This document shows positions 392 through 60,360 of a stretch of 64,000 bases of DNA, one piece after another. Below the pieces are notes generated by a model. That model ran no database searches. It saw only the letters and a program-made list of their open reading frames with translations, and was not told the DNA's origin. Position 1 is the stretch's first letter. Each line of letters starts with the position of its first letter. Source of the DNA: Anthoceros angustus. Its lineage: Eukaryota > Plantae > Anthocerotophyta. The stretch is from contig VJWM01000068.1 of NCBI GenBank assembly GCA_010909165.1, forward strand, positions 558,001 through 622,000, written 5' to 3'. A program made the position numbers and the translations under genes.

Positions 392-1958
392 ATGGATGCA
401 TGCGGGAATGGAAAGGGAAGCGAGGATTGGAGGTCGCGCATGGGCGAGGAGTCACATAGCCACATCAGAATGGAGAAGCTGAATAGGATGTGAGTTTGGC
501 TCGCACCTATAGCTTGTACCTTCATGTAATTTGGTGCAGGTGGTGCGATTCTTCATCAGGGCCGGGGAGCAGAAGATGGTGTGCACTAGTGAATTGTGGA
601 TGGAGGAGTCTGGAGGAATTCATCTGAATGGACTTGTTGGTTGCAGAGCGCACAATCTGCTGAAGCACAGGCCAGTTGAAGATGAGCAGGGGATGAACGT
701 ATTGTTTGAAAACGCGGTTGAGTGGGAGCAGATTATCTTCGACGTTGCTATCAGTCTGGTAAGGTGGGAGTGTAGACGGGGCGGCTCTTCTATAGTTGTG
801 CTGTCTTTCATGCTGGCCATGTCCTGTGTCTGTTGCAGCATGATTATCTCGTCACAGCAAGTTTGAATGCAAGTGAGGTGTTTACCAAAGCGCAGGGTCC
901 TGCTGACGGAGAACGTGAGCCAGGTGAGGTGAGAGGGGGAGGCTATAGGGAAGGGCTCATGGTGTGGTGTGGTTAAATAGCTATGGGTGTTAATTGTGCT
1001 GTGTTGGACAGAACCGACGAGTCTTCCGACAACCAGCTTTCAACCGTCAGGAGGCGGGGCTCAGGCTGCACAGAATGCAGTGGGCACCACGTCTATGTCA
1101 TGTCTTGCACTTGCTCAGGCGCATCAGCAGGGGCATATCGAGCAGCAGCCACAGCAGCCGCAACTCCCATCTAATTCTCAGGTCCTCTCGCAGCATCAGC
1201 ACCAGCACCAGCAGGGGCAGCACCAGCAGTGGCAGCACCAGCAGGGGCAGCACCAGCAGGGGCAGCACCAGCAGGGGCAGCACCAGCAGGGGCAGCACCA
1301 GCAGGGGCAGAACCAGCAGGGGCAGCACCAGCAGGGGCAGCACCAGCAGGGGCAGCACCAGCAGGGGCAGCAACAGCAGGGGCAGCAACAGCAGGGGCAG
1401 CACCAGCAGGGGCAGAACCAGCAGGGGCAGCACCAGCAGGGGCAGCACCAGCAGGGGCAGCACCAGCAGGGGCAGCACCAGCAGGGGCAGAACCAGCAGG
1501 GGCAGCACCAGCAGGGGCAGCACCAGCAGGGGCAGCACCAGCAGGGGCAGCACCAGCAGGGGCAGCACCAGCAGGGGCAGCACCAGCAGGGGCAGCACCA
1601 GCAGTGGCAGCACCAGCAGTGGCAGCACCAGCAGTGGCAGCACCAGCAGGGGCAGGACCAGCAAGGGCAGCACCAGCAGTGGCAGCACCAGCAGGGGCAG
1701 CACCAGCAGGGGCAGCACCAGCAGGGGCAGCACCAGCAGGGGCAGCACCGGCAGTGGCAGCACCAGCAGGGGCAGCACCAGCAGGGGCAATACCAGCAGG
1801 GGCGGCACCAGCAGTGGCAGCACCAGCAGGGGCAATACCAGCAGGAGCAGCGCCAGCAGTGGCAGCACCAGCACGGGCAGCAACAGCAGCGGCAGCACCA
1901 GCAGGGGCAACACCAGCAGGGGCAGCAACAGCAGCGGCAGCACCAGCAGGCAGCACCC

Positions 1959-1991
<33 letters not shown>

Positions 1992-2612
1992 GCAGCAGCA
2001 GCAGCAGCAGGGGCAGCAACCGCAGCAGCAGCAGCAGCAGCAGGGGCAGCAACCGCAGCGGCAGCAGCAGCAGCAGCACCAGCAGGGCAGCGGGGCAGCA
2101 CCAGCAGCAGCACCCGCAGCGGCAGTGGCAGCGCCAGCAGTGGCAGCAATAGCAGCGGCAGCGGCAGCGGCGGCGACAGCACCAGCAGCGGCAGCGGCAG
2201 GACCAGCAGGGGCAGGACCAGCAGCGGCAAGGGCAACCACAGCTGTAGCAGTCTCAACAACCTGTCACTTCTAAGTGACTTTTGTTTGACAGCCTCCCTC
2301 GATTCAGGGGAAGTTACTCCTGGACGGAGCAACGCATATGATAGAGTTAGCATTCAGCAGCAACGACAGCAAGCCCAGGAGCAGCGCTGACTCAGCAGCA
2401 AGCCAAGCAGCACCAACACCAGCAGCAGGGACTCAGCAGCAAGCCAAGCAGCACCAACACCAGCAGCAGCAGAGCAGAAGCAATCCCAGCAAGATCTAAC
2501 ACATCTCGGGTCCTCCCGCTGCACACATCAGCAGGTTAGCCGATTATTCTACTGCTGTTGGCCTGCGCGTGGAATCTTCGTGAATTTCTCTGACTCAGGA
2601 GCCACCAGCTGA
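392..2612 (+). pseudogene. MED15-like: MED15-like KIX + (QQGQH)n protein, copy 1; 5' part intact, 3' part frameshifted or stopped
   Basis: Exons 392-489, 647-758, 839-923 and 1012 onward splice in frame via GT-AG introns to give MDACGNGKGSEDWRSRMGEE..KLNRI/AHNLLKHRP..AVEWEQIIFDVAISL/HDYLVTAS. This matches the plant MED15 KIX pattern (DWR..IVNKI/METLKKH..FEEKIF/DYLRKIS). The Gln frame shifts at ~1950 and ~2090 and has TAG stops (2150, ~2246). The final exon has TGA at 2388-2390, followed by a broken TM-tail relic (RSNTSRVL..IILLLLA..FVNFSDSGATS*). Confidence 0.75.
1200..1950 (+). repeat. 15-bp coding minisatellite CACCAGCAGGGGCAG, about 50 units, encoding HQQGQ; followed by CAG-rich microsatellite to ~2240
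   Basis: Directly visible tandem array with single-base variants (TGG=W, AAC=N, TAC=Y). Confidence 0.97.
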
Positions 2613-3153: not shown

Positions 3154-4108
3154 ATGGATGCAGGCGACAATAATGGAAACGGAAGCGGGGATTGGAGGTC
3201 GGGCTGGACGACTGGTTACGCCCCAAAATGGTGAAGAGGATGTGAGTTTGCGTCGCCCCGCGGATCCAGTTTGTGCCATGCAGGTGGTGCGATTCTTCAG
3301 CAGGCCTAGGGCGGGGTGGCCGAAGATCTAGAGGAGGGAGCCCCGTACTTGGGGTGTTCATAATATAATTTTAGGATCTCTTAATGTTGCGATTAGGGGT
3401 GCCGCTGGACTACAGTTGGTGCGCTCTAGTGAATTGTGGATGGAGGAGTCTGGAGGAATTCAGGTCGAAAACTATGCACAGGCTCATGCCGGAAGTAGAT
3501 CGGATGGAACCGATAGGTCGATATCCTATGCGAAATAATTGATATTGCTATCGGGTTTGAGCGCGAGATCTTCGAAGTTGCTACCGATGAGGTAAGTTGG
3601 GCGGGAGTGTAGACGGGACGGCTCTTTTATGCCTGTGCTGTTTCTCAATATGCTGGCTGGCCATGTGCAGCAAGATTATCTGCGAAAGATATCGTCGAAG
3701 GTTCTTTTGCTGGAAAACCGGGCGCAGCATACTGAGGAATGGCAGGGGGATTTGCAAAGGTTCCTCAGTTCGATGGGTTTACTGAGGAAGCAAACTCAGC
3801 CGCTAGCAGGTGGGTCTCAGGTGCTTGTGCAAGGGCAGCAGATCATTGCTCAACAACTGCAGAGTGGTATCGACGGAGGTCCGTCGACTCTTGCTGGTGC
3901 TCTTGTACAGAATGCCCTAGCAGCCACGCCTGTCCCAAATCTTGCACAGAGGCAGCGGTTCCAGCTGCTTCACGAGTTACCGCACTTTCAACAGCTGCAA
4001 CTACTGATCGACTACCGACGGGAACATCCTTATGGACCCATACACTTTACGGCGGCAACCCCAGGCAGACCTGCATTAATCGTCTCGAGAGGCTCGAATG
4101 CTAAATGA
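3154..4108 (+). pseudogene. MED15-like: MED15-like KIX gene, copy 2 (frameshifted)
   Basis: MDAGDNNGNGSGDWRSG..(frameshift)..RPKMVKR|gtgagt at 3242. Exon 2 ends IDIAIGFEREIFEVATDE|gtaagt at 3592. Exon from 3671 reads QDYLRKISSKVLLLENR, nearly identical to the MED15 KIX helix-3 motif DYLRKISxKxL. There are 1-nt frameshifts in exons 1 and 2. Confidence 0.8.
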
Positions 4109-5560: not shown

Positions 5561-6400
5561 CAATAACCTGTCATAAATCCAAGGTCATATATCAAACCGC
5601 CCAAAAGGCATCCCAAGATCATACACATTAGACAGCTCGAAGGGCAAGGATGGTCAATTCCAAGGGCAACGACGGCCAGCCGGAAGGGTAACACCAGCCC
5701 TCTTACATACGAGACCATTAGATAAAGAAAAGCTTACTAGAGGGCTAAAAGCGTACACAACAATTAGGCCACTGGCCAATGGTTACCCCAATCGGGGAGT
5801 TCTTTGAGCTCGGATCACTCCTCAAGGGAGATCAGGTAGCCCCTACTCTCATTATGAAGAGTTGTAACACATCATTTCGCGAAAACGATTACAACATCAT
5901 ATAAGTGTAGAAGCATGAAAACATACCATGTGGCAAGTGGCAACTGCTGACAATTATTCTCATTCCGCAGTTCCAATTCAAGTTCAAGTTTATTGAAGAT
6001 GTCTCCGTAGTGTATACAATTGACATCCACTAGGACGTGAAAACTAACTAAACACTTGGAGAGACAAAAGTAAATACCCGGACAATTTCAAAGATAGGTA
6101 AGACTGACTTCCTGCACTAGCGAAATACTAGGTGAAGACATTTGCGGACCAAAAGGGCAGAAGTGCAGTGCAGATCACAGGATACTCAACCTGGCTGGAT
6201 TCAAAGGTCGACACTGCTAAGGAGCTGTACACAATTGCTAAGAGCCTTATCAGCGAAAAGAAACAGGCAAACCATCCTCAGGCCACATCCGGAGCGAGCA
6301 AGGACAGGAAGCCTATCATACGGAAATTCTATCTACTGAACTGCACATTGCTTGCGAAGGCTTGAGCTGAAGGATTACCGTGCGGCCGGGTTTGCCCGCT

Positions 6401-9037
6401 ATGGATATGGATGCATGCGACAATGAAAACGGAAGCGGGGATTGGAGGTCGGGCATGGGCGAGGAAGAACGCACGCGCATCAGAATGGAGAAACTGAATA
6501 GGATGTGAGTTTGGCTCGCCGCTCTAGCTTGTGCCTTCGTCTAATTCGGTGCAGGTGCACGACTAGTGAATTGTGGATGGAGGAGTCTGGAGGAATTCAT
6601 CTGAATGGACGTGTGGGTTGCAGAGCGCACACTCTGCTGAATCACAGGCCCGTGTTAAATGACGAGGGGATGAGCGCATTGTTCGTTGACGCCGTCGAAT
6701 TTGAGCAGGCAATCTTCGACGTTGCTACCGATCAGGTAAGGTGCGAGTGTAGACGGGGCGGCTCTTCTATGGCTGTGCTGTATCTCATGCTGGCCATTTG
6801 CTGTGTCTGTTGCAGCTCGATTATCTGACCACTGCAAGTGTGCATGCGGACAAAACCCGATGGGGTAATGAACCAGGTCAGAGGGGGAGGCTCTAGGGAC
6901 GGGCGCATGGAGTGGTGTGGTATCCATCTCTCGTTGCTCTATTTCTTCTGGTTTGATTGTGCTGTGTTGGACAGGTCCATTCTTCTCAGAAACAAGTCCG
7001 TTCGACCTTCTGAGAAGACGAACTCAGACGTCAGCAGGCGGGTCTCAGGTTAAACAGAATGCTGTGGCCACCACGTCTGTCTCAAATCTCACTCAGGCGC
7101 ATCAGCAGCGGCATATTGAGGAGCAGCCACAGCAGCAGCAGACGCTCCCTCAGTTGCAGCATCAGGACAAGCAAGGACAAACGGGATTGGGTGGAAGTGG
7201 ACAACTGCAAGAACAGCAGCAACAGGCAGTCGAGCAGAGCCTCCTTCAACAGCAGGAGGTGCTACAGGCCGATGTACAAAGGGCCCTTCCTCAAGCTTCT
7301 TCTGGTTGGTATGGGAGGTCAACATTGTCATAGGCTGCAAGATTTACCAAATTGGCACTCTCATTCTCAGTGACATTTGTTTGACAGCATCCCTCGAGTC
7401 GCCAGGGCAGCAGCAAACGTTCCCTCAGTTGCAGCATCAGGACAAGCAAGGACAGAAGGCATTGGGTGGAAGTGGACAACTGCAAGAACAGCAGCAAGTC
7501 CCAGCAAGCCCAGCAGCACGGACAGGCCGACAGACATATCTAGAGGCATTATTATCATGTGTAAATGGGACTCGATCGAATAACGACTTCGGGCAGCACC
7601 AGCAGCGGCAACACCAGCAGCGGCAGCGCCAGCAGCATGTTCAGAAAGTGCCTCAGCTACAGAAGCGGCAGCAGCAGCTGCACCAATTGCAGCAGTCAGT
7701 TGGGCAGCGAACTCAACAGTCAGTTGGGCAGTCTCAACAGTCAGTCGAGCAGAGCCTCCTTCAACAGCAGCAAGTGCAACAGGCCAGTCAGCCACGGGCC
7801 CTTCCTCAAGCTTCTTCTGGTTGGTATGGTAGGTCAACCTTGTTATAGGCTGCAAGATTTGTCAAACTGTCATTCTCATTCTCAGTGACATCTGTTTGAC
7901 AACATCCCTAGACATGCTGCTACAGCAGCCTTCACAGGAGGGACTGCAGCACCAGCAGCGGTTACAGCAGCGGCAAGAGCAGCACCAGCGGCAGTTACAG
8001 CAGCAGCAACAGCAACATCCACATCCACATATTCTGCAGCAGCAGGCGCAGCCAGTCCTGCATCAATCGTCCCAAGTGGCTCAACTGCAAAATGCAGTTC
8101 AGGGCATGCAGCAGCAGCAGCAAGACCAACCACAGCTGCAGCAGTCCCAACAGCCAATCACTTCACAAAGTCAGTCACAGGAACAATCTCAGCAGTCACA
8201 TCAGATGCTTGCAGCGGTAACTAGCCAGCCGCAGCAGCGAATTAAACAGTCAGTTGGGCATCAACAATCAGTCAGGCAGAGCCTCCTTCAACAGCAGCAG
8301 GTGCTACAGGCCACTCAGCAACGGGCCCTTCCTGAAGCTTGTTCTGGTTGGTATTGTAGGTCAACCTTGTTATAGGCTGTAAGATTTGCCAAACTGTCAT
8401 TCTAATTCTCAGTGACATTTGTTTGACAGAATCCCTCAATTCGTCAGGGCATTCTATTGGCCTGTCGCATCAACCAGGCCTGTCAAGTCAGATGATGCAA
8501 ACACATCAAGTACAGCTTCAGCAACCGCCGCCTGGGGTGCAGACACAATCGCTGCAACAGCAGCAGCAGACGCTCCCTCAGTTGCAGCATCAAGACAAGC
8601 AAGGACAGCAGGTACGACAACCCCTGCAGCACATCCCTGCCCAAGTTCCTGTCTCGACATTGTATCGTTCTAACCTTTCATCCATACATGTACAGCCAAA
8701 TGGTGAACATGGGCCGCAACAAAACATGATGAACCTTCAGCAGAATGGAGGAGAAACATTTCCTGGACAGAGCAACTTATCTGGTACAGCATTAGGTGAA
8801 AGTGGACCAGTTAGCATTTTGCAGCAACAACAGCAAGTCCAGCGGCAGCAGAGACCCAGCAGCAACCGCAGAAGGAGAAAGCGCAAGGACACCAAGCCCA
8901 GCAGCGGAGCAGAAGCAAGCCCAGCGAGATCTAACACATCTCGGGTCCTCCTCCAGTACATGTCATCGTGTTTGGCGGTGATTATTTTGCTGGTGGCCTT
9001 CTTCGTCAAATTCTCTGACTCTGGTGCAGTGAGATAA
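6401..9037 (+). CDS. MED15-like: MED15-derived protein, copy 3: N-terminal KIX, Q-rich region, basic NLS-like patch, C-terminal transmembrane helix (~693 aa)
   Basis: Exons 6401-6504, 6624-6735, 6816-6876, 6975-7304, 7388-7819, 7912-8346 and 8430-9037 total 2082 nt and stay open. KIX motifs are GDWRSG, AHTLLNHRP, AVEFEQAIFDVATDQ and LDYL. RRRRKRK lies at 8867-8887 and VLLQYMSSCLAVIILLVAFFV at 8945-9007, followed by a 9-aa tail. The acceptor at 7911 is inferred because the paralogous AG reads AA at 7901-7902. Confidence 0.7.
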
Positions 9038-9056
9038 TCTAGATGGTTCTCAAACA

Positions 9057-9243
9057 TTCTCAAACAACTGTTACTGTTCGTAATCCAAATGTTCCTCAAA
9101 CGTCCGTTACCGTTCATAGTCCGCATGTTTCTCAAACATCCGTTACCGTTCAGAAATGCTTTTGTGGTTTCGGATGTGACGAAAGTTCCTGCCTTCTCAT
9201 CCAAGTTCCTGCCTTCTCATCCAAGTTCCTGCCTCCTCATCCA
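9057..9243. repeat. Two short tandem arrays (33 bp x3, ~20 bp x3) downstream of copy 3
   Basis: TCTCAAAC..C.GTTAC.GTTC units at 9057-9152; AAGTTCCTGCCTTCTCATCC units at 9183-9243. Confidence 0.8.
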
Positions 9244-10375
9244 GAAGCGAAAGAAGCGCGTTTCTCACGGCTTGGACCAGGGTTCGGAGAACACTGCAGG
9301 ATGCGTTGGAACGGTTTCAACCCTTTGGAAAAGCCTTCAGGTAGTCTCCGCCAGCTCACTAGCCAGAATGCTACTGTTCAGACAGGTCGGGATCCAGACG
9401 GAGCTGCCGGTGTGGCCCCACGGCACAGCTATGAAGAGCGTGGGGAAATATAATCCACAAAAGCCTCTATCGCGGCTACAGCTTTAGTAGCAGCAACACA
9501 GGACCCTTGATACCTGCAACAGTGCCAAACTTGTCATCCTTCCTGCCCCGTCTTGTGACATTCATGGTATAGGTGCACAGAAAGCAGACAAGAACTTACG
9601 TAGCGATGATAACATAGGAAAAGGTCCGACATATGATAGCCCCAGCTCCCGCAGGATCAGTGTGATTGATACAACGCGCAGCGTACAAGTGCTCGTCAAC
9701 AGTTGTCACCATGTCTGCACATGCAACATGTAACTTGTCGAGGACTGCCCACGCGATTCACACGCACAAGTTCAAGTACTAGTTGAAAGCATACATCTGC
9801 TTGATCCAATGTTGAAGAAGTTAGTATGTAGGGAATTGTCTCTAACCCCTTCCATCACTGGCCTGACATCAGCAGGCTTCAAGTTGAGGCCCTGTTGCTC
9901 CACCCTGTCCACACATACAGAAACTCTTGAGCCTCAGAAGGGAGTGACGCCATACAAAAAGATCCTCCACACATCTTACTCACACGAGAGTGGAGAAGCG
10001 GAAAGGACGATCCGGAGCCACGGTGACCACTGCTGCACCGGTCAGAGGTTTGCCTGTGACATCCCAACATGTGGGTTAGGTCTTCAGAGCGAAAACAAAA
10101 GAAAGGAAACAGTTTCTGGTACCAGAAGATGCTATGGTTGCTGCAGCCCATCGATCCCACCCGCGATGCAGAACAGCTTTGTCCCCCATCACCTTGCCTA
10201 CTCAAGCACCAAGCACCTTACCTTGCAAGTTGTCAAGTATGATGGGAAAAGTCTATCCAAGTACCTTCCGGTCAAGCACCTTCCTGTCGTGGGGTTTCAT
10301 CCTCTTAAGGTTAGAGTTAAGCCCTATAAGTAGTTGCGGAGCGCAACGGCTTACGATCTAAGAGCCGGTGGAGCG

Positions 10376-13300
10376 ATGGCGAAGCAGAAGGCGGGGTCGG
10401 GATCTAAGAAGAAAAAGCATGGCCCTGAGGCTGTAGCTATGAAGCGACGGGGAGCGAAAGTAGCAGCTCCCAATCCCTTTGACACCGTTCGGACGAGGAC
10501 AAAATTTTTTGTTCTGGGCAAGAAGCGGAAAGGAGCTGCGCGGAATATTGGTGAGACACGAGCTGGAGCGGGGGACAAGGTGACATTCCATCTGGGCCGT
10601 TACCCGTCAGAAATTTTGTGGATTGTAGGCAGGGTTTATCCAGGGTTTAAGGAGCTGCCAGATGGAATCCTGCTTCAAGGAGGATGCATGAGTTTTGCGG
10701 TGGATTTGCTGCTTTGAGGGATGCACGTGCCATGGGCTCCTCGTACCTTTGGCCATATTCGGGGTGAGTGTATTGGCATAATCTAACCCACAGCACCGTG
10801 CAGAGGAAGACGACTCTGTTGGAGGAGTACAAGCAGCGAGGCAAATCAAATGTTTTCCTGGATCGTCGCTTTGGTGAAAGGGATGAGGGCCTTACAGAAG
10901 ATGATAAAGCGATTTTGCGGTTTCAGCGTGAGCGGCAGGTGATTCTTCGGTGTCCTCTGTGTGTGTCTTCAAGGGTCAATGCAGGAGAACGATAAACAGT
11001 CCAGGAGGCCAAGGTTGACAGGATATTTGTTTCAGGCACAAATCAATCGTCGAAGCAAGTTTACATTAGCGGATGATGATGACGATGTGGAGCTCCTTAC
11101 TCACAAAGGCGCAGTACTGTCCAGTCTTGATGACTTTAAAGATGACGTCCCTGAAGACGACGATGAAGATGCAACAAGTATGCATGTGTGGAAGTAAACT
11201 TCATTCGTGCGTCTGATATCTGCTTTGTGTCTTACTTTTGGAAGTAATGGTTCAGGGGACGAAGATGCCTTTGAGGAACTGCGTTTTGGCGGTGGCATCT
11301 CCAATCAGAGGAAAAGTGGTGATGTCCCTGAAGGAGACGGAGAGGTGTGTCTTCCTGTTTAACGACCTCTGATGGGTTCTGCAAGACTGGTGGTTGACGG
11401 TCTTTGCACTTTGCACGAAGTTTTGCTTCATGTAGAATCTAACTCGAGCTATTCATTTCGCAGCATAGGAAAACAAAGAAGGAAGTTATGGAAGAGGTTA
11501 TGGCAAAGAGCAAGTTTTACAAGGTGCGGTTTTGGACCGGCCCTAGCTTTATTGGTGAGGGCTATTTCGGCTTAAGATCATGACTTTTCATGAGGTTCAC
11601 ATATGTGATCCATGCAGGCACAAAAAGCCAGGGAGAAGGAAGAAGACGAAGATCTGAAACAAAAACTGGACAAGGATTTTGCTGCGTTGGCTCAAAGCCA
11701 GGCATTATTATCCTTGGTGCGACCAAAAAAGGGAGCTGCTGACCCGTCAAGGAGTGAGAAGGTAACATCAACATGCAGTGCGTTTGGACTTATTATTGTG
11801 GTGGTCAAAAAGTCTGACCTGACACAGCATGTGGTTTTCCTGAAGCTTCCGTTTGATTTGCTCACTCCATTGCAGGCAGGGCCTGATGACTACGAGAAAT
11901 TAATGAAGGAAATGGTGTTTGATATGAGGGCACGTGCTTCTGACAGACTTAAAACTCCGGAGGAGCTTGCTGAAGAAGAAAAAGCTCGCTTGGAGGAGTT
12001 GGAGGTTAGTGGGGTGTGCCTAAGGGGTTCTCTCTCTCCCTTTCCCCTAATGGTTTAGTTAGACATGTGCGGGGACTGTGTAAACCCTACAAAGTACAAT
12101 ATGTCGTTTTGGGGTGTATGCAGAAGAAGCGCAGAAAACGGATGCTTGGAGAAGAGACCTCTGAGTCTGAAGGCGACAGTGAGGATGAGGGTGCCGGGAG
12201 GTGATCATTGAGCAGTTCTACCGACCTATGGTCCTATTAAGATAGACATTTTCATCTGGTCTTTTGTTCACCACTCTTCCTGGTGTTGATAGTGTCTTTT
12301 AATGACTCTATACCAGGAAGAGGAAGAGGAGGAGAGAAATCTCTGGTGATGCCTTGGGTGAGAATTTTGTACTCGAAGAGGACGAGGAGAATGAGGAGAG
12401 AGGCTGGGTAGATGAGGTGCTAGCGAGGAAGGGGGGAGAGGAAGGAAGTGACGAGGAAGATGGTTCTGATGATGACAGTGAAAGTGAAGGTAGTGAGGGC
12501 GTGAATAGTGATGCAGAGGAAGATGAGGATGAAAGTGGAGAGGATGAAATACAGGAGAACAAGGACTGGGAGCAGAGTGATGATGAGAATGCCGGTATGG
12601 AAGATGCTGCCAAAGCCATAAACGGGAGCAAGTTGAAGAGTGCTCAAGTAGATGGGAATGATCCTGTGCCTGCATGTCCATCAAAGGGACCTGATGGGGA
12701 TAGTGGGCTGACCAAGTCTGAGCGGAAGAAGAAGAAAGGAGGGAGAGGCGAAGTACCTTTGGACAGAGCCAACGAGCTCCCCTTTGTCATCGAAGCTCCA
12801 AAAACTTTGGAAGGTTTCAGGCAACTTGTGGATAACAGGTCGGATGAGGAACTTTTGGTTGCCGTCCATCGCATACGGACATGTAATGCCATCAGCTTGG
12901 ATGCAGAGAATCGCAAGAAGATGCAGGTACTTGTCGTCACTGATGTGTAGTGCTCTGTGAAGTCTGGTCACCAGTGGGATAAACTGCTACCTATTTGTTC
13001 TTCGCAGGTCTTCTATGGTGTTTTAGTACAGTATTTTGCTGTGCTTGCTTCAGACAAAGCTCTACCTTACAGCAGATTGAATGTTCTCACTAAGCCCTTG
13101 ATTGAGCTGGGGTCAGAGACACCTTACTTTGCTGCACAATGTGCCCGGCAGCGTATAGTGCGAATGCAAAAATTGTTATCAGAGAAACTGAGAAATCCTG
13201 GTAAGCACGCTGTCCGTTGATAGCTCAAATTGGCCTCGGGGATTTTCTTATTGTTGTCCACGTCTTGCGCCGTAAGTATTGACGTTTGTCCAGCTTTCTG

Positions 13301-14681
13301 AACGACTATTTTGTTATCTGGTGATGTGGCTTTGTGTAGATGGAACAAGTTGCTGGCCGTCAGTGCGAACACTGCTGCTTCTCAGGCTTTGGTCAATGAA
13401 TTTCCCTCCTTCTGACTTCCGGCATGCTGTGATGACCCCTGCCATGCTACTGATATCGGAATATTTGATACGATGCCCTGTTCTTTCTGGTCGCGATGTG
13501 GCTGTGGGCTCGTTCCTGTGCTCCCTCGTCCTCAGTGTAGGTCCTATGACTGCGCTTTCCGCTGCTGATCTCTGACGTGTTTCTACTTGGCAAGTGGGCA
13601 CTTTTTGACATCAGGCTGCAGGTCATGAGGCCTGCCCGCAGGTTTTGTCCTGAGGCACTAAATTTCGTGTATGCACTTTTATTATCGGCTTTGCCAAGCA
13701 GTAATGATCTCAGGATCGAGACTCTGAGGAAATATGTGAGTATCTCATCTTACTCCGTGTTCGGCAGGTCCTTCTTAGGAAATGAAAGTTTGCAGGACGC
13801 TGTGGAGGAGATGCCTGACTAGCCGGTTTGCCAGTGTCCAGCGTTCATGTTGCAGCTTGTTGGATCAAAGCACTGGCTGCTGCTTGAAACGAAGAAGCCA
13901 GCAGTGGAGGATCTGGATTTTGTCAGTCTCATGACGTCAGAGGATACGGCGGCCATTTTCTCTACGGATACTTTCCGGTACGCACACCATCTCCTCCTTG
14001 GTGAAATTTCACCGTTCCCCATGGGGTCCGTTACCCTGACAGTGTGTATCTGGCAGGGCGGGAATACTTTATGCCATTCTCCAGACTCTGAAGAGCTTCA
14101 TAAGCATGTACGAGGACCTGAGCTCCTTCCCAGAACTCTTCAAACCCTTCATCTTGCTCGTCACAGAGCTGGCAGACAACACGGAGCTTCCAGAGAAGCT
14201 TCTTCTGCTCCTGACAGAGATCCGTCAGACCACGGAAGCGAAGGTCAAGGAGCAGGAGACTCTCCGGCAGCCACTCCGCATGCGAGCCAAGAAACCAGTG
14301 CCCATTAAGCAGTTCAATCCGAGATTTGAAGAAGAGTACGTAGCATCAACTCCACCTCTCCTTCCCCACGTGAGCAAGCTCTCTTCTGACGCACTCTCCC
14401 TTTCCTGCCGCAGTTTCGCCGCTGGCAGGGACTATGACGTGGACCGGGAGCGAGCCGAGAAGAAGAAGCTGCTCCGCCAAATCAAGCGAGAAACCAAGGG
14501 CGCAGCCCGGGAGATCCGCAAGGACAATCAGCTCCTCCAGCACGAGAAAATGAAAGAACGCGCAGCGGCCGACGAGGAGCGCAGAGAGAGGTACAATAAG
14601 GCCATGGCGTTCTTGCAAGAGCAGGAACACGCCTTCAAGTCGGGCCAACTCGGAAAAGGACGGAAAAAGAAACGAAGGTGA
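10376..14681 (+). CDS. NOP14: Nucleolar protein 14 (SSU processome), multi-exon
   Basis: PNPFD; RKTTLLEEYKQRGKSNVFLDRRFGE; LTHKG; KTKKEVMEEVMAKSKFYK; DDYEKLMKEMVFDMRARASDRLKTPEELA; acidic region; ELPFVIEAP; FPPSDFRHAVMTP; PIKQFNPRFEE; KRETKGAAREIRKD..LQEQEHAFKSG. GT-AG introns, e.g. 10580-10803. Confidence 0.95.
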
Positions 14682-15427
14682 AGTCATCTTTCAGCACAAG
14701 CGCGAGCTAGTGATTACTTCGAATATTTTAGCTCCCGGGACTGCCATGCCCTTTTGGCCTTGAGCGCCACGTAGCCAATCAGGCAGCCGTTGATGCACAG
14801 GCTAGCGCTCACTGTAGAGGGCCGACCTTGAGGTCAGCATTCACGCTCTAACTAACTCATCAACAACAACTTTGTCCGGGAAGGATGAAAGGATCATCAT
14901 GGGGGATAGAGATATTATAGTGTAAAATAGGGGAAAAATTGAGTACACGAACGGGGAATTGCTTGAGATGAGTAAAAGAGGGGAAACCTCTGTCAATCTG
15001 CGCAGATAAGGATTGAATTCCCTCCGCAGTGCTCAGGATTCCGTCCCCACACAGCATCAGTGAGTCCACTCTTGATGACTGTAAAGAGGTGTACCTGAAG
15101 TGGAGGATGATGATGCAGCAAGAACTGGTCTTGTAAGCTCCATTCGTGCATCTGATTTTCTGCTTTGTGCATCTGATGGTAGCATCTTCAGGAGGTTGCC
15201 AAGATGGAAGTCTGCTCTGGACGCTGGCAAAGGTTGCACAGCCACACTGATGCTGCTGCTGCTCATCTCTCTTAGGTTTCCCCATTTCCCCAACCGACCT
15301 CTGGTTTGTGGAAACCTGCTTGTCATAGGTGAAAGGTCTTCCTGAGCAATAATGCCAACCCATTCATAGCCTCTGCACAATGCAAGATCTGTTGGCAGAC
15401 GCTCGGAAAGGAGCGGCTTGGAGTGTT

Positions 15428-15660: not shown

Positions 15661-16610
15661 TCATGTTTCAGCAGGTTTTTTCCGCCTGAATGTCTCCATG
15701 AGGGACACGATTTGCCTGGAGAAGGTCTCCACCTTCTCCAAATTGAATTCCATTGGCAGTCTCTCTTTTGGCACAGTCAAGTAAGGAAGCATTCGTCCGA
15801 GAACTTCTATATAGTGGTGAAGCTTCGAGAGCTGCTCTGCCGCCATTGCCTGACATATCCACCAATCCCAATTATCAGCACACCACGAAAATTGCTATGC
15901 ACGTCTCCAAGGGGATGGGGAGAAGGAAAGATGGAAAGGAGGGAGGGGAGGGAGAAAAGGGGGGCGGACCGACCTGTTTGCTCTTATATGTTAGGAAGTT
16001 GGAAAGGGCACGCATGTCTTCAAGATACTCCTCCTTCAAGACTTGGAGCTGCACATGATTCCCATACTTGGATCAGAAATCCCGACCAGGGCCGATATTC
16101 AACCAACCTTATTACACTAAAAACCAGAAATTATTCAAGCAACCTTCTTTGCATCATATAAGGAATCACCTTGGGCCACACGAGATCGCGTTCATCAACA
16201 ATGGAATCCTCTGACACAAAAAGCAAGACAAAGCAATGAGACATGGATGGAAAGCTACTCCGGAAATGTTGCCGCAGTTTTCCATCCCAAATCCCTCTTC
16301 ACAAATTCCATTCAACATAGCAACTTTAAACTTCTTTGACCTGGAAGCTTAAACCACACCACTCCATGAGCCCTTCCCGGAGACTCCCCTTCTCACCTGC
16401 CCCACCACCCTGGGCGATCCCTCCTCCCATTCCTCTGTTATTAGCAGGAGTCTCCGCTCGGGTTTCCAGCTTATCTCCAGATCTCGCTGCAACAGACACA
16501 GCACATTGCCAGCATGTAAGACACAACAGCCGCAAAAGAGCCGCCCCGTCTGCACTCCCAACCAGCTTTCTTACCAGGTCCCTTCCGTTCCAGTTGCCGC
16601 CTGCATCCAT
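15661..16610 (-). pseudogene. MED15-like: MED15-like copy 4: KIX largely deleted, retains the MED15 central helical region
   Basis: Exons 16610-16575 (MDAGGNWNGRDL), 16486-16397 (frameshifted; ..KLETRAE..), 16210-16170, 16048-15974 (LQVLKEEYLEDMRAL) and 15849-15661 (EQLSKLHHYIEVLGRMLPYLTVPK..KVETFSRQIVSLMETFRRKKP). The last two resemble the MED15a segment KIKSMKETYLPDL..QLEKL..LERMIQFL..KQII..RKP. Its intron resembles intron 2 of copies 1-3. Confidence 0.7.
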
Positions 16611-16937
16611 GCAAGGAGCCCGGGAACTCCGCCGCACAGCAAGCTTCTAGCTCAACCCTTCGCCGGCCACGTATCCAACTGACACAGCTTGACTGCAGGA
16701 ATCCGCTGTTTCGCTCTGACACTGAAGTAGGACAAACTAGGGCGAGGGAAGCCTGTTCGGGTAACTGGGTGACCGACTGCTGCCGGGATCGGTAACCCGC
16801 TGCAAAACCAGACCTCCGTCTCCAGCTTTGAGAAGGAACCGCGCGGAATGCTGGTCGGAAACGATCAAATCCAGATGTTTCTCAAAGATCCGTCAGTCGA
16901 GGAGCGTAGCTGCGAAGGATCTGAGAGCGGTGGAGCG

Positions 16938-19620
16938 ATGGCGGAGCACAAGGCAGCGTCAGGATGTAAGTATAAAAAGCATGGGCCTGAGGCTGTGGCT
17001 GTGGCAATGAAGCGACGGGGAGCGCAAATAGCTGCTCTCAATACATTTGACACCGTTCGGACGGAATTTTTTGTTCAGGGCAAGAAGCGGAAAGGCGCTG
17101 CGCGGAATGTTGGTGAGACACGAGCTGCAGCGGTGGACAAGGTGACACTCGATCTGGGCCGTTACCCGCCCGAAATTTTGTAGATTCTAGGCGGGGTTTA
17201 TCCAGGGTTTAAGATGGAATCCTGCTTCAAGAAAGATGCGTATGTTTTGCGGTCGATTTGCTGCTTTGAGGCATGCACGTGCCATGGGCTCCTTATGCAT
17301 TTGGTGAGTGTATTGGCATAGTTTAACCCACAGCACCGTGCACAGGAAGATGACTTTGTTGGAGGCATACAAGCAGCGAGGAAAATCAATTTTTTTTCTG
17401 GATCGTCGCTTTGGTGAAAAGGGATGAGGGCCTTACACAGGAGATGACAAAGCCAGGTGAACGGCGGTTTCAGCGTGAACGGCAGGTGATTTTTCGGTGT
17501 TTTTGGTGCAGGAGAATGATAAACGCTCCAGGAGGCCAAGGTTTACACGATATATGTTTCAGGCACAAATCAATCGTCGAAGCAGGTTCGCATCAGCGGA
17601 TGATGATGGCAATGTGGAGCTCCTTACTCACAAAAGCGCAGTTCTCTTCCACTCTTGATGACTTGAAAAATGACGTCCATGAAGAGGACGATGATGATGC
17701 AGCAAGTATGTTTGTATGGAAGTAAGCTTCATTCGCTCTCTGCTGATTTCTGCTTTCTGTCTGACTGTGGGAGTAATGGTTCAGGGGGCGAAATTGGCTT
17801 TGAGGAACTGCGTTTTGCGGTGGTATCTCAAATCAGAGGAAAAATGGTGTGTCTCTGAAGGCACATATGAGCTCCATGTAGGCTCAAAAAGCCAGGGAGG
17901 ATCTGAAAGAAAAACTGGATGATGTTGCTGCTTTGGCTCAAAGCTAGGCACTATTATCCTTGTTGCATGCAGGGACAGATCACTACGAGAAATAATGAAG
18001 GAAATGGTGTTTGACATGAGGGCCCGTGCTTCTGACAGGCTGGAAACTCTTGAGCAGCTCGCTGAAGAAGAAAAGGCTCGCTTGGAGGAGGTAGAGGTTA
18101 GTGGGGTGTGCCTAGGGGGTTTTCTCTGTCCCTTTTCCCTAAAGGGTTTTTTTAGACAGTCGTGTAAGAGTGTGTCTACAAAGTGCATGGATGTTGTTTT
18201 GGGGTATATGGGCACAAATCGAATGTTTGGAGAAGAGACCTCTGATTCTGAAGGTGACAGTCGGAGCCTCCCAAAGTCTGGAAGAATTTAGGCAGCTTGT
18301 GGATGAGGAGCATCTGGTTGCCGTTCATCGAACATGTGTTGCCATCAGCTTAGCTGCAGAGAATCGCAAGAAGATGCGTGTACTTGTCTTCACTGATGAG
18401 TAGTGCTCTGTGAAGTCCGGCCAGCACACATACAATCAACTGGTGTGAGCGCCTTCATACAATCAACTGTCCCTTGATCGCTCAAAGTCACCTGGGAGAT
18501 GTTCTCATTGGTGTTCTCGCCCTTTCGCTGTTAGTATTTGACGTTTGTCAAACTTTGAGAAAGACCATTTCCTGATCTGGTGACGTGGCTTGTGTAGACG
18601 GAACAAGTTGCTGGCATCAGTGCGATCACTTCCACTTCTCAGGTTTCGGTCCTTGAATTTCCCTCCTCCTGACTTCCGGCATGCTGTGATGACCCCTGTC
18701 ATGCTACTCATGTTGGATCAAAGCCCTGGCTGCTGGTTGAGACGAAGAAGCCAGCAGTGGAGGATCTGGATTTTGTCAGTCTCATGACGGTGCACTTACC
18801 GTCTCCTCCTTGGTGAAATTTCTCCTTCCCCATGAAGTCCATTACCCTGACTGTGTCGTTAGTGGGGGAATACTTTATGCCTTTCTCCACACTTACGAAG
18901 GGCTTCAAAAGCATCTACGGACCTGAGCTCCTTCCCAGAAATCTTCAACCCCTTGGCCGTCGCAGAGCTGGCAGAACGGAAGGAGCTTCCTGAGAAGGTA
19001 CTTCTGCACCTCACGGAGATCCGTCAGACCACGGAAGCGAGGGTCAAGGAGCAGGGGACCCTCCGGCCGCAACTACGCATGCGAGCCAAGAGACCTTTGC
19101 CCATCAAGCAGTCCAATCCGATATTTTAAGGGTTGAAGTCCACGTGAACAAGCTCTCTCCTGACGCCGTTTCTCGTTCCTACTGCAGGTTCGCTGCTGGC
19201 TGGAAGACGACGTGGACTGGGAGCAAGCCGAGACGAGGAAGAAGCTGCTCCGCCAGCTCAGGCGAAAAACCAAGGGCGCCGCCCGGGAGCCCCTCAAGGA
19301 CAATCTATGTATGCTTCCAGCCAGAGAAAATGAAGGAGCGCGCAGGTGACGAGGAGCGCAGGGAGAAGTACAACAAAGCCATGGCCTTCTTCCGGGAGGA
19401 GGAACACGCCTTCCAGTGGGGCCAACTCGGGAAAGGACGCAAGAACAAACGGAGGCGACGTCATCTCCCAGCACACGCGCCAGCCAGTAGTTGCTGTGAA
19501 TATTTTAGCTATCGGGAGCGCCATCTCCCCTTGGCCTCTAGCGCCAAGCAGTACAGAACTGGTTCCGCAAGGCAGCCGGTGAGCATGACGGTCAAGAGAC
19601 GTCTCCCGGCCTGAGGTCAT
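16938..19620 (+). pseudogene. NOP14: NOP14 pseudogene from segmental duplication (introns retained, large deletions, frameshifts)
   Basis: Colinear similarity to 10376-14840, including introns and 3' flank (KKHGPEAVAVAMKRRG, MKEMVFDMRARASDRLET, FPPPDFRHAVMTP, EKYNKAMAFF). The frame is repeatedly broken and the acidic exon is largely missing. Confidence 0.9.
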
Positions 19621-19796: not shown

Positions 19797-20035
19797 CCAT
19801 GCACATACAACCTGTCCGACTTGTCGATACAGACCTTCTTGTCGGCGTCCATGGCGGCTCATCAGCAGCCGCCTTGCCTGCCACTGCTGCAGGGAGGCGG
19901 AAGGACGGGCCTCGGGAGCAGGGACGTCGATATCGCCTGCTGCTGGTGGCGGCTCTGCTCGCTGTGATAATTCTCGTGTTGGCCAGCTTCGCCTCGGGCC
20001 CTGAACCTGGTGCTTTTCGGGGAAGAGAAATCACG
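19797..20035 (+). other. Orphan exon resembling the TM tail of the MED15-like family
   Basis: Follows a TGACAG acceptor. RRYRLLLVAALLAVIILVLASFASGPEPGA aligns with copy 3 CLAVIILLVAFFVKFSDSGA; DNA GCTGTGATAATTCTCGTGTTGGCC vs GCGGTGATTATTTTGCTGGTGGCC. Confidence 0.45.
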
Positions 20036-20091: not shown

Positions 20092-21387
20092 ATGGCGGCC
20101 CGGTTGGCGACGCTGCTGGTGGCGGTGGTGTGCGCGACGCTTCTTCCAGGCGGGGGCTGGGGAATTCGGGGCGCAGCGGGGCAGCTGTCGGTGGATTTCT
20201 ACGCCAAGACGTGCCCCGATGTGGAGGCCATCGTGCTGGGAGTGGTGAAGGCCAAGTTCGCGGAATCGCAGATCGCGCCCCCGGCCACGCTGCGCCTCTT
20301 CTTTCACGACTGCTTTGTCCGAGTGCGTGAGTGAGCTACGCCCGGCGTGCGCCGTTTCTGTGGGGCTGTGTAAGCGGCTTGTGCTGACGTGAACGGAATT
20401 CACGACCGAGTGTTGGGTTGGCAGGGGTGTGATGGCTCCGTGCTGGTATCGTCGCGCGGCAGTAACGTGGCGGAGAGGGATGCGCAGCCGAATTTGTCCC
20501 TGGCCGGGGACGCGTTCGACTCCGTCGTGCAGGCCAAGCAGGCGGTGGAGGCCAAGTGCCCCGGAGTGGTGTCCTGTGCGGACCTGCTTGCAATCGCAGC
20601 GAGAGATTTTGTGGGTCTGGTGAGGAATCGGATTTCCCGGCCGTTGCCGGAAGTGGGTCGTGGGGAATCGGGCTGGTTTGTGACATCGATCGTCTCCTTG
20701 GTTGGTTCTTCAGGTGGGAGGGCCGACCTGGCAGGTGCAGAAGGGGCGGAGAGACGGGAGGGTGTCCCTGGCGTCTGAGGCGGTTGCCAATCTCCCGGAG
20801 GCGGACTTCGATGTGGACAAGCTGGTGGCCAGGTTCGCCTCCAAAGGCCTCTCGCAGGACGACATGGTTGCTCTCTCAGGTGACTCAACTTCCGGGTTAT
20901 CGTAATCGAGCACTCGCACTCGTGTTGTAGACTGTATGGATGGGGGGCTTGAATGGAGGAATGTGACATCGATGTTGCAGGTGCGCACACCATCGGGTTC
21001 TCGCATTGCGATTCCTTCTCCACGCGGCTGTACAGCTTCAGCACGAGCGCAGCCACCGATCCCAGCATGAACGCCGCCTTCGCCAGCGACCTGAAGCAGG
21101 CCTGCCCCAAGGCGGGTGATCCCGGGCAGGTGGAGCCCCTGGACGTGACCACCAACTTCCAGTTCGACAAGGCTTACTACGCCAATCTGGTGGCAGGCAA
21201 GGGCCTGCTCTTCTCGGACCAGGTGCTCTTCACGGACGACAGAACCAGGAACCTGGTCCGCGTCTTCTCCAAAAGGACGCCCAAATTTTTCGACGCTTTC
21301 GTTGCCGCCATCACCAAGATGGGGGCCATCGGAGTCCTCACGGGTTCCCAGGGGGAGATACGAAAGGATTGCACCGCCATCAACTAG
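20092..21387 (+). CDS. Class III secretory plant peroxidase
   Basis: Exons 20092-20322, 20425-20619, 20714-20879, 20981-21387 (canonical 4-exon layout). Signal peptide; FYAKTCP; [16 protein letters not shown]; VSCAD; GRRDG; VALSGAHTIG; GLLFSDQ; GEIRKDC. Confidence 0.97.
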
Positions 21388-27448: not shown

Positions 27449-29773
27449 CTAGAAGTCCGCCTGCGACGATGACTCTTCCTCCACGTTGGGCCGCATGAAG
27501 GTTCGCCTCCACCAAACTTCAAAAGCCTTTTGCAGGTTGGGGCAGTCGTCACCGTTGCTTGAAAACCGATCGAACCAGGCCATCAGGATGTTCTGCTGCT
27601 GCTTCAACGGCAGTGTCAAAATGGTCTGGCTGATACCCTCTTCCACGACCTTTTTGTCCAGACCCTTACACCCCCGTTGCATCCACCCAAAGTCGTCAAC
27701 CAGCGGTTGCAACCAAGTCTGCAGGAGACAAAACCGCACTTCCTTCGGGCACAGCACTTGCCCTTTCCCGATAGCCACGCAAAGGCGGGCAGTGAGGCGA
27801 CTCACTTCGTACCGGAACATGGTGGGAATCTGCGTGTGCAGAGTGGCCAGCTCCGACTGGTGCGCCCACATTTTAATAAAATCATCCGCAATCCGCCTGT
27901 CAATCAGGATGTCCACAAGCCAGTGCAGGTTATCCGCCTGCCGCCCTATCTGCGACACCATAGTCCCCCTATCCCCCCCATTCTTGCTCACGAAGTCCGG
28001 GCTGGTGGCCTGCATGAAGAGATGCAGCAGCGAGTCGAGGCAGCCGTGGCACGCCCGGTACAGGCTCTCCTTGCTCACGTCCGCCGGCTCCTTCTGCTGG
28101 TTGGAATTCTCCCGCAGCATCCTGGCCACCAGCGCCTTCATCTCCCTCCTCGCCTTCTCATCCGTACTATTCGTCACCGACTGCAGCAGCTTCACCAGCA
28201 CATCCTCGTTGTCGCTCCCCGCATCCGCGGAGTAGCACCTCTTCAAAACCTCAGCCGCCCCCACCCTGTCCAGCTGCAGCTGCGACAGCAGCGTCGTCAC
28301 CTTCTCCTCCTCCTCCTCTTGCCACGGCACCGCCTCCAGATACTCCAGGCACGATATCACCCCGGCCTCGAACACTATCGCTGCCGACACCTGCAACATC
28401 CATTCCGAGTTCCATCCCAGCCCCGGAAAAAAAACAACCTCTGTCAGCCTCCATCTCCACCCGCTTCAGCACCCCTAACCCTCCAGCGTCTCAATAGGAT
28501 CGAAAAGGCGACTCAAACACGATTCAAACAACACACACCTTGAGGATGCCGAGGACGCGGGGGACGTTCTCCTTCATGAGCCGGCGCTTGACGTCCTGGC
28601 AGTACATGAGGCGGAGCGTCTCGAGGTAGAGCTCCACATCCTCGCAGTCGGAAATCTCGACGAGGTGCGGGAGGGAGCGCTGCTGCTTGGACCAGCGGTC
28701 GGAGAGCTTGGCCGCGAAGAACCTGCTGTGCGTGACGAGGATATGGCGGTGCACGTTCACCGAGACGCTGTACCCCTCCTTGCTGCTGAGGGTGAGCTTC
28801 ACGTCGCTGGAGTCGGCGTCGTTGAACTGGCTCCCGGGGCTGCCGCCTGCGAGCAGGAGGCCATCTTGTCCTGGAAGGAAGTCTGGCGGGCGCCGTGCGC
28901 CGCCATGACCATGGCGGCGCCGCCGGTAGCGCCGGCTGCGCTGCCGAGCTGCAATGCGGGGACCGGCGCAGCCATGGCAGCCGGCGGCGCCGCCACTTGC
29001 TGCGGAGGCGGTGGAGGCCGCCGGCTTCGGCTGCAGCTCGTGCTCGTGGGACATCATCTCGAAGAGCGTGGGGAGGACTTGATCTTGTCCACGGGCGGGG
29101 AGGAGGAGACGGTGCTGCCCGCCCGGGCGGAATACCCCGGCGGCATGGCCTGCTCCACCAGCGGCGACACCTTCCCCGGGGACAGTGACAGGCGGCGGAA
29201 GGGCGAGCCAGACGATCCCTGCTGTTGCTCCCCGGACTTGCCCTTGCTGCTCTTGAGCGGGACGATGGCCAGCTCTCCGCTCTTCTTGTTGTACGTGACC
29301 TGCAGCTCGCCGGATTTCTTGTTGTACGCCACCAGCTCGCCGGACTTCTTGTACGTGGCCACCACGAGCTCGCCGGAGTAGGAGCGGGATCGCATGCGCC
29401 GGTGGCCTGGGCCCTGCGTATGCTGCTGCTGCTGCTGTTGCTGCTCCTTCTCCTTGTGCTGCTCTTTCTGCTGTAGCCCGGGCGGGGAGGAGGCGGAGAG
29501 CGGGCGGGAGATGCAACACCAGGAGGGCTCTGCCTCCACCACCTCCTTGCGGAGCGTGATGCGGCCGCTGCCGCTGCCGCTGCTGCTGCCGCCGCGGTGC
29601 AGCAGGGAGGTGGAGCTGGAGTCCTTGCCGCTGCCGTAGACCCCGGCGGCGGGGGCGGTCTTAGGGGCGGCGTGGTCGTCGTCGACGCCGACGCGCCAGG
29701 CAGGGGTGGGGCGGGCGGTGTAGGGCGGGGAGGAGGGCGCTGCGGCTGCAGGCGCGGGAGGCTCCACTGCCAT
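27449..29773 (-). CDS. Plant BTB/POZ-domain protein (At1g63850/At3g50780-type family); apparent indel frameshifts in exon 1
   Basis: Exon 1 29773-28539: [68 protein letters not shown]. Intron 28538-28391. Exon 2 28390-27449: [62 protein letters not shown]. Confidence 0.92.
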
Positions 29774-50900: not shown

Positions 50901-51823
50901 GCTTCACCGCCTCCAGACCCTCCATCCCTGTGTCCACAAGGGCGCTGCCCGCCTTGTTCGGGAAGGGCGCAGTGCTTGGCTATTGGCCCGCCCATGCATA
51001 CGGGTTTTCACATCGCACCAACCACCTTCACCATCGCGATGCGATTCCGTCTGGCTCGCCCACCGTGGCTTCTTCGCTCCTTACTTGCGAGTGCGGCTCG
51101 CCTCGATGATTCCGGGTACACCTTGCTCGTTGTCCCACGGGTCATCGATTGCCACTCACGACGCCATCCGCGATGTCATGTTCGCCATCGCCGCGAAAGC
51201 GGCTACATGGCATGGAGGGAGCGGATGTATACTCCGCATGTGTCGCTCAATCCGGCCGACTGCACTTGTCCGTGGCGACTGTGTTTCGTGGCGTATGTGG
51301 TGGTTACCGATCCTACACGAGACACCATCTCCGCCAGTCATCACTAACCGCCCAGACCCCTCCATCCCAGGTCCACAAGGCGGCTCTCAAGGTCCGCAAA
51401 TATTGCGGGATGCAAGCGGCCACCTCTTTATTCCGCTTGCACTAGAACGATGTAATGGTCGAGGACTTTGACAAATTTGTCAAGTCTGTGCCAAAGCTTA
51501 CCATGCACGAGACACCATCTCTGGGGCTGCAGTTCTAGGGGTCCCTCTCAGATTACAAAGATACTTCCGACAACGGGTTTCAATTGCCCTTCAACGCGCC
51601 TCAACGGCGATCCTCCACAAGGCGGCGGTGGGTGGCGCATCTTCCTCTACCTCCGTGGTTTGCGGGCCGTTTATTCTTCCCGCATATGACATTGTGGGTG
51701 CGATGGGTGACTTTAGGTAGGGAGCTTATTTGCTCCTCTTCACCTTGACCCCTGGTCCTCTTTGGTTGTCCCCTCCTAGATGGGCTTTTCCCATCGTTTT
51801 TCACTTCAATAAAATATTTCCTT
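41996..51823 (+). mobile_element. CRE-like non-LTR retrotransposon (RT + restriction-like endonuclease), internally repeated and frameshifted
   Basis: N-terminal C2H2 finger CPVC..THIGHMH (~43320-43385); LLLLPRWCL; RT motifs RPLAVGEAFMRL, DVENAFNTISR (4 copies: ~44410, 45360, 46860, 47800), QGDPLGGALF, GLKVKPPKC. C-terminal CECG..C, HDAIRDV, PADL, DVVVTDP, KVRKY, FIPLALE (3 copies). AATAAA at 51808; flanking direct repeat ACTAACGAGT at 41986-41995 and 51824-51833. Confidence 0.8.
42026..42955 (+). repeat. Extremely G/GC-rich low-complexity tract (GGGAG, then GCGG/GCGC)
   Basis: Almost devoid of T. Purine-rich first third, CpG-saturated remainder. Lies in the putative 5' UTR of the non-LTR element. 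Confidence 0.9.
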
Positions 51824-51833
51824 ACTAACGAGT

Positions 51834-59307: not shown

Positions 59308-60360
59308 CGAGTGCATACATCCAACTAACGGGGGCAAACATCCAACAAACCAGGGTAGACTTGCAAGGATCATTTGCTAGGCTAGAGCAATGTATGGTAA
59401 TATACAGTTCAACAGTTTTACAGGGCATTAGTAAGAATTCCTTAAATGTGTGTTCTTGCATTCCCTCTTTGAAATGTACAAGGGTTTACGAAGATAACAT
59501 TTGCACCCACGTTGAAAAGATGTTTGGGATAGACTCATTCCTATCTAGGTAATGAGATGGTTTTTCTATATGGAATAAGTGTTGCTCAATAATATGATTT
59601 TCATTGTTTGATCTTTCCTCTTTTCAGGTCACTTCACGATTTTGCATTATTTCTTCATCACGAAGTCACATCCCGGAATTCAACATGGTGTGAGATTTTA
59701 TTAGATCCGATGCAAATGGCCCAAAAAGTGACCTGGAGCATAGTGAGAGAAAAATTTTCAAAACAACTTTTGCAAAGGTTGGAAAAGTTCTATGGCCAAA
59801 CGTGGGTGGATAGTGCCAGAAATTTGCTCGACAATGATTTTATGTGTCTTTACTGGTAATTATGATGATAAAGCTCTCAACATTGCTTTGAAAGAAGTTG
59901 AAGAAGGTGTTGCAGCTTTCAACAGAGGCGAAGAGAGTAGAGGTAAGTTAAATTGCTTCAAACTTCTACAATGTCTTCTATTTCTGAACATTGTTTTTTT
60001 GCTCTAACATTATTCTCAATTCCGTAGGTACTTCTGCACTGTGAGAGTGTCGGGCATCATGTGCTTGATGGCAGCTGTTTTCCTCTATTGTATTTAAATA
60101 AGAAAGCATTGCTGTTATCTAAAATACTAGACTTCAACGCTAAATATTGGATGTCCTATATAATGGACAATATGGTTATATAGATATAAGAGAAATCAAG
60201 TTAAGTCTTGATTACAGCAGCGCTGTAGAGTAATTCGGTCCATATCTTGGGGCATTGAAGTGGTTTATTTGTATGAGCTGTGATCAATCCGAAGAAGTCG
60301 TTTTAGTAGGCCGATTGTTTGTATTCAAAGACGGCACTAATTAGGATATTACAGATAGGA
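57975..60360. repeat. ~1.2-kb tandem duplication spanning the element end and its flank
   Basis: 57975-59148 vs ~59149-60360. The first copy differs mainly by many single-base deletions. Confidence 0.9.

Follow-up and report, generated by a model that had tools for sequence, protein, structure and literature searches.

The window analyzed here, a 64,000-nt stretch of the Anthoceros angustus genome, contains a KIX-type gene (gene 2) at 6401-9037 of the forward strand, with three related copies in its neighborhood (copy 1, copy 3, and a fragment) that are all visibly broken. The seven exons of gene 2, every one of them bordered by GT..AG, join into an open frame of 693 codons, and the host DNA is eukaryotic and plant-type, with a G+C content of 52%. 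As judged from the sequence, gene 2 appears to be the only structurally intact member, within the window, of a MED15a-like KIX cluster shaped by birth and death of its copies. Positions of its exons, of the features of its predicted product and of the other genes are collected in Table 1.

Elsewhere in the window, a Nop14 gene is accompanied by a second copy, shortened by deletions, that is probably a pseudogene. The KIX-gene fragment lies head-to-head with this second copy. No Pfam family was matched by the exons of the small gene that converges on gene 2. Further downstream, the regions 43748-57734 and 57978-60372 hold several tandem-repeat families with units of ~1-1.3 kb and 79-95% identity, set in G+C-rich DNA; after them comes A+T-rich sequence that contains a duplication of 1.2 kb.

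Table 1. Genes, exons and protein features in the window (positions counted from its first nucleotide).
Feature	Position	Strand	Description
Copy 1	392..2390	+	Open KIX exons, HQQGQ array, frame change to poly-Ala, mostly deleted intron, stop ahead of the tail relic
Decayed tail relic of copy 1	2465..2612	+	69% nucleotide identity over 259 nt, E 1.6e-27
Copy 3	3154 to ~4100		Stop in exon 1, shortened
Gene 2, exon 1	6401..6504	+	ATG at 6401, donor GTGAGT at 6505; KIX-like start (DWR motif, helix 1)
Gene 2, exon 2	6624..6735	+	KIX core, helices 1-2; Pfam KIX_2 match
Gene 2, exon 3	6816..6876	+	Remnant of KIX helix 3, DYL alone kept
Gene 2, exon 4	6975..7304	+	Q-rich, phase 1-1, open frame
Gene 2, exon 5	7388..7819	+	Q-rich, phase 1-1; 3' end and next intron duplicate their exon 4 counterparts
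Gene 2, exon 6	7912..8346	+	Q-rich, phase 1-1; acceptor shifted
Gene 2, exon 7 and stop	8430..9037	+	Open to TAA at 9035-9037
Basic patch RRRRKRK	8867..8887	+	Read from the sequence; NLS-like; would give the helix a positively charged cytosolic flank
Hydrophobic 21-residue segment (residues 664-684)	8945..9007	+	Candidate tail anchor
9-residue C-terminal end after the helix	9008..9034	+	Net charge +1
Convergent gene, 148 aa	9205-10189	-	Four introns, all confirmed by RNA (CT..AC when read on the + strand), stop codon at 9429-9431
Nop14 gene	10376-14690	+	Pfam Nop14, E 9e-36
KIX-gene fragment	16350-16620	-	Broken copy
Second Nop14 copy	16895-19546	+	Shortened, with deletions; 76-82% identity
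Class III peroxidase-like gene, start	20092-20331	+	Signal-peptide-like start, FHDCF motif, weak Pfam peroxidase match on first exon
BTB/POZ gene, At1g63850/At5g60050 type (PF25553)	27449-29520	-	Best database relative from Sphagnum, 74%

The joined protein of gene 2 was used for the frame check, hydropathy, comparisons within the window and dN/dS estimates, and family scans were run exon by exon. Outside the Q-rich runs, ~310 codons contain no stop (0 found), a length far from what chance would leave open. The 3' ends of exons 4, 5, and 6, together with the introns that follow them, are 84-94% identical to one another and thus arose by internal duplication; since all three exons are phase 1-1, any one of them could be skipped with the frame and the tail kept. 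At exon 6, the ancestral acceptor (7901-7902) reads AA rather than AG, and an AG located 9 nt downstream (7910-7911) restores the frame. A candidate in-frame intron of 84 nt can be read from the sequence within exon 7 (8612-8695), where the donor reads CAG/GTACGA (8611/8612) and the acceptor tacag (up to 8695), with a ctaac motif as well; its removal would yield 665 residues instead of 693 and leave the C-terminus unchanged. The introns of gene 2 measure 80-119 nt, in keeping with the 69-86 nt of the RNA-confirmed introns of the convergent neighbor, which favors the model. Of the architecture proposed in the sequence-only reading, the seven-exon frame of 693 codons, RRRRKRK, the 21-residue segment, and the 9-residue tail were all recovered, while the KIX part is represented by a partial match of exon 2 alone.

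A genomic DNA run (X1) carries 1-nt deletions, one of which shortens the GGGG homopolymer near 6666 in exon 2. We rejected a true frameshift in favor of run errors, because X1 departs from the window by one base at seven places in the neighboring gene and the RNA contig has the window's letters at five of them (9442, 9831, 10183, 10393, and 10475), and because GGGG preserves the frame that is common to copy 1. Compared with the window, X1 shows single-base gains or losses at 6666, at 6883, and between 9442 and 10475, nearly all of them losses and at least one (6666) in a homopolymer. The RNA run (X2) matches the window at every such place that it covers, so X1 looks error-prone rather than the window wrong. 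One X1 contig resembles the first part of exon 7 (8461-8623) at 95% or more, with several differing letters and other sequence upstream; a close paralogue of this segment is present elsewhere in the genome.

Scanned alone, exon 2 matched the Pfam KIX_2 profile (PF16987) with an E-value of 0.0023 and 18.2 bits, below the gathering score of 25.6 bits, across profile positions 22-58 of 83, and exons 1 and 3 scanned in the same way gave no match; the profile check thus bore out the proposed KIX domain for exon 2 in part, and left exons 1 and 3 without a match of their own. Exon 2 of copy 1 matched positions 24-55 (E 0.019) and exon 3 of copy 3 positions 58-80 (E 0.021). Given that exons 2 and 3 of these paralogues map to consecutive parts of the profile, exons 1-3 of the family encode a single KIX_2 domain. 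The third helix of KIX_2 (positions ~58-80, DYLRKIS-type) is not recognizable in gene 2, in which exon 3 retains DYL alone and gives no match; it is degenerate and has diverged past detection. On this sequence evidence the head of gene 2 looks KIX-derived, with a KIX-like fold and binding that are putative. No Pfam family was matched at meaningful E-values by exons 4-7, where no conserved C-terminal domain was detectable, and the exon-by-exon Pfam scan found no DNA-binding family in any exon of gene 2. A sequence search for a PDB relative of exon 2 came back empty.

The KIX domain of MED15 is one of the chief places where plant activators, DELLA and NPR1 among them, dock, and a conserved C-terminal region links MED15 to Mediator. 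Gene 2 resembles the plant MED15/MED15a-like proteins (Arabidopsis MED15a-f; KIX_2, PF16987) in possessing an N-terminal KIX_2-type segment with DWR, seen here as a partial KIX match, followed by a long, disordered Q-rich region (175/693 residues of the protein, or 25%, are Q), and in belonging to a multi-copy family. It differs from them in that KIX helix 3 is not recognizable and in that the protein ends in a basic patch and a hydrophobic helix.

Comparison of gene 2 with copy 1 showed that the KIX exons have diverged more than the introns between them. Identity was 92% in intron 1 and 91% in intron 2, as against 85% in exon 1 and 76% in exon 2, the KIX core (Fisher p = 1.3e-4). By the Nei-Gojobori method, dN was 0.21-0.26 and dS 0.35-0.55, compared with an intron distance of ~0.085. 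One reading of these values is that the KIX exons may have been driven apart by selection; another is that the introns may have been homogenised while exon diversity was maintained. Faster divergence of KIX exons than of introns hints at an arms-race-like or specificity-shifting family. The better-conserved intron sites lie at 6505-6623, 6736-6815, 490-646, 759-838, and 3426-3462, and three copies, of which two are dead, share an identical 37-nt island within intron 1, with ~4-5 genomic copies carrying it as estimated from depth. The conserved islands matched no credible Rfam family, the only hits being bacterial sRNA models that fell on CAG repeats and scored far under their gathering thresholds, and intron 1 folded no better than shuffled sequences (z = -0.14), so neither a known RNA nor a structured element was retained as an explanation.

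Gene 2 is weakly transcribed. Contigs of the RNA run lie over exon 4 (7138-7295, depth 2.5) and exon 5 (7626-7796, depth 3.7), both with no mismatch, and over exon 7 and its downstream sequence (8724-9212, exact match, depth 13.5). These contigs carry no strand; no splice joints inside gene 2 were seen in them, and no contig of the run was seen over 6288-7023, which includes KIX exons 1-3. On the opposite strand, a 3035-nt RNA contig of the convergent neighbor with four CT..AC joints reaches 9205 and runs into the Nop14 gene that stands head-to-head with it; at 9205 a tandem repeat breaks DNA and RNA contigs alike. Because the depth of 13.5 is well above the 2.5-3.7 of exons 4 and 5, and because the neighbor has its stop codon at 9429-9431 and a contig extending to 9205, the antisense 3'UTR of this neighbor may make up a large share of the RNA seen at the tail. 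The expectation that RNA would document the gene was consequently borne out by exact contigs on exons 4, 5, and 7, and fell short at the junctions, over the KIX exons, and at the tail, where the signal is ambiguous.

These observations bear on the possibility that gene 2 is a real KIX-polyQ gene whose mature mRNA omits the tail through an alternative 3' end or splice, giving a soluble nuclear MED15-like protein. RNA on exon 7 that shows neither junction nor strand, and a signal at 8724-9212 that the 3'UTR of the neighbor could explain, are compatible with such an mRNA, and the extra donor at 8611/8612 is a good one. The sole in-frame acceptor found for this donor (ending at 8695) nevertheless retains the tail, the convergent neighbor leaves just 170 nt downstream for another last exon, and the tail was coding in the ancestor (see below), so that we consider a tail-less product distinctly unlikely.

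The tail itself contains one outstanding hydrophobic segment. On the Kyte-Doolittle scale, residues 664-684 average 2.48 when all 21 are counted and 2.37 for 19, and their Hessa-scale sum is -1.1 kcal/mol. Elsewhere in the protein of gene 2, the best 19-residue value is 1.06, and there is therefore no signal peptide and no second membrane helix. Modeling of the last 113 residues with AlphaFold2, without an alignment, gave a sole helix at residues 76-109 of this fragment, which spans the hydrophobic segment, with pLDDT values of 87-95, and disorder in the rest. A single helix no more than ~30 residues from the C-terminus, with no other membrane segment in the protein, is the layout of a tail-anchored protein, and membrane insertion is predicted from sequence and model. 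In such an arrangement the helix would enter the ER or nuclear-envelope membrane post-translationally and leave everything N-terminal to it exposed to the cytosol or nucleoplasm, with the basic patch on the cytosolic side. Like tail-anchored proteins of the GET/TRC40 class, gene 2 combines a helix within ~30 residues of its C-terminus with a positively charged flank toward the cytosol and a luminal tail that is short, and it lacks a signal peptide; that class is defined by experiment (post-translational insertion), whereas gene 2 is likened to it by sequence and the N-terminal third of its helix is semi-polar. NAC NTL factors, bZIP28, and bZIP60 likewise hold a nuclear-acting N-terminal part on a single C-terminal membrane helix (predicted in gene 2), from which it is released by proteolysis or splicing. 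Unlike gene 2, which is co-activator-like and shows no DNA-binding domain and no evidence of a cleavage site, they possess DNA-binding domains of their own and conserved cleavage contexts.

A search of the last 113 residues against 1.84 billion representative proteins found no real relative at E<=0.001. The one match, P0001, is a 683-aa tandem-repeat protein that was matched near its N-terminus, and it was discarded as spurious. When the window's BTB gene was searched as a control, the best match came from Sphagnum (74%), followed by a lycophyte, a conifer, and a fern, with no near-identical protein among them, and close relatives of the organism are therefore poorly represented in the library. 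The spread of these matches and the short introns would fit a hornwort. The tail thus appears to be lineage-specific in the sense that it is absent from the well-represented plant lineages, close relatives being poorly represented. The depth of the DNA run over the tail is 11.6-14, which is the single-copy level, and so there is no near-identical second tail in the genome.

The sequence-only reading had held that no described TM-anchored KIX family was known, a statement contradicted by RhMED15a-like of Rosa hybrida (XP_024157462.1), a protein of 529 aa with an N-terminal KIX and a predicted C-terminal TM domain (PMC11059607). According to its authors, RhMED15a-like is the only TM-bearing protein among the homologues that they aligned, and GFP-RhMED15a-like was located at the nucleus and plasma membrane (PMC11059607). 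A literature search for KIX or Mediator proteins with a tail anchor or membrane tether yielded nothing beyond this paper (PMC11059607), and one on hornwort MED15 arrays yielded nothing. The rose protein and gene 2 have the same domain order, KIX and then a C-terminal TM segment. They differ in that rose is an angiosperm and in that no relation between the two tails was found, as seen through the search of the representative library; this would point to an independent origin of the tails or to divergence past recognition. The anatomy of gene 2 thus appears real and unusual, with the combination of KIX and C-terminal TM already known from rose.

A tail that is present in the protein need not be an anchor. 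The helix might instead mediate a protein contact, an amphipathic association, or degradation, with RRRRKRK driving nuclear import. Residues Q, Y, S, and S in the first third of the segment reduce its uninterrupted apolar core to 13 residues, the classical NLS-like patch lies 19 residues upstream, and the TM-bearing rose protein was also seen in the nucleus. Inserted helices, however, show values of this order (here 2.4-2.5 on average across 19-21 residues, together with a Hessa-scale sum below zero), and we regard such a role as very unlikely. As to the sequence-only reading as a whole, the architecture of a KIX-like head, a polyQ region, a basic patch, and one C-terminal helix of membrane grade stood up in silico. 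The proposed function drew no support: RNA was seen neither across the splice junctions nor over the KIX exons, KIX helix 3 is degenerate, the tail is without relatives, and the gene is placed among dead copies.

The age of the tail could be addressed through the neighboring copies. In copy 1, ~70 tandem 15-nt units encode HQQGQ between 1190 and 1960 and then slip into a poly-Ala frame; further on, a large part of exon 7 is deleted and a stop codon stands at 2388. The relic of the tail proposed earlier at ~2490-2612 was confirmed by nucleotide identity (Table 1) and by agreement of 20 of 33 residues with gene 2. The relic contains an in-frame TAG and a frameshift, lies in another frame than the upstream coding sequence of copy 1, and matches gene 2 by halves in two frames; because both halves match the protein in its coding frame, the tail was coding in the ancestor. 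The tail is thus older than the duplication that separated gene 2 from copy 1. This much of the proposal that it predates the duplications is upheld, whereas the third relic on which the proposal also drew (19797-20035) is at chance level. We dismissed this segment because its 15 agreeing residues of 45 and Smith-Waterman score of 55, where chance gave at most 48 in 2124 six-frame windows, place it at the top of the chance distribution and not beyond it, and because there is no nucleotide match. The ORF at 19797-20035 matched no Pfam family and consists of G+C-rich DNA directly 5' of the peroxidase gene, whose start codon is at 20092.

Since their split, copy 1 has undergone a frame change, has lost an intron in large part and much of exon 7, and has acquired a stop within its tail, while gene 2 has merely undergone a compensated acceptor shift. 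This asymmetry argues that selection may have kept the frame of gene 2, including the tail. Alternatively, gene 2 was recently inactivated or was never functional, with its frame held open by the short time elapsed and by CAG/CAA-rich sequence that is poor in stops, and the tail is a leftover without a role. The broken state of copy 1, copy 3, and the reverse-strand fragment at 16350-16620 would fit such a history, as would the degenerate KIX helix 3, the loss of the ancestral acceptor, the low and fragmentary RNA that is missing from the KIX exons, and the orphan state of the tail. It accounts poorly for ~310 non-Q codons that are free of stops and frameshifts when the equally old copy 1 shows several lesions, and for a lost acceptor that was replaced in frame in a gene whose exons 4 and 5 are transcribed. 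We consider inactivation somewhat unlikely.

Taken together, our preferred reading, to which we assign a probability of about 45%, is that gene 2 is a lineage-specific, weakly expressed MED15-like paralogue with a tail-anchored product. That product would consist of a divergent KIX-like head, a long, disordered Q-rich middle derived from internal exon duplication, an NLS-like patch, and a terminal helix. This reading is favored by the canonical exon borders, the open frame, the KIX_2 match, the single C-terminal segment of membrane grade, the AlphaFold2 helix, and the precedent in rose; it is weakened by the missing RNA on exons 1-3 and the junctions, the orphan tail, the unrecognizable helix 3, the loss of one acceptor, and the dead neighbors. 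Membrane insertion, the choice of membrane, activator binding by the altered KIX, and a decoy or release function are what we infer from these features, and gene 2 might serve as a decoy or a tether, or be released from the membrane. A bolder proposal, to which we give a low probability, is that a fast-diversifying KIX family in an early-diverging land plant has yielded a membrane-tethered member, that its KIX-polyQ part would either trap activators (or MED15 ligands of pathogens or hormone pathways) at the nuclear envelope or ER or come free in response to a signal, and that the KIX exons would be under positive selection, evolving ~3x faster than the introns.

If gene 2 is merely a copy that is not yet broken, the cluster would represent ordinary gene-family turnover. 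A membrane-held KIX-polyQ protein, if true, would add control of location to a co-activator, a principle that is known for NAC and bZIP factors and has hardly been explored for Mediator-like proteins. As a second, apparently independent case beside rose, it would suggest that this is a recurrent design.
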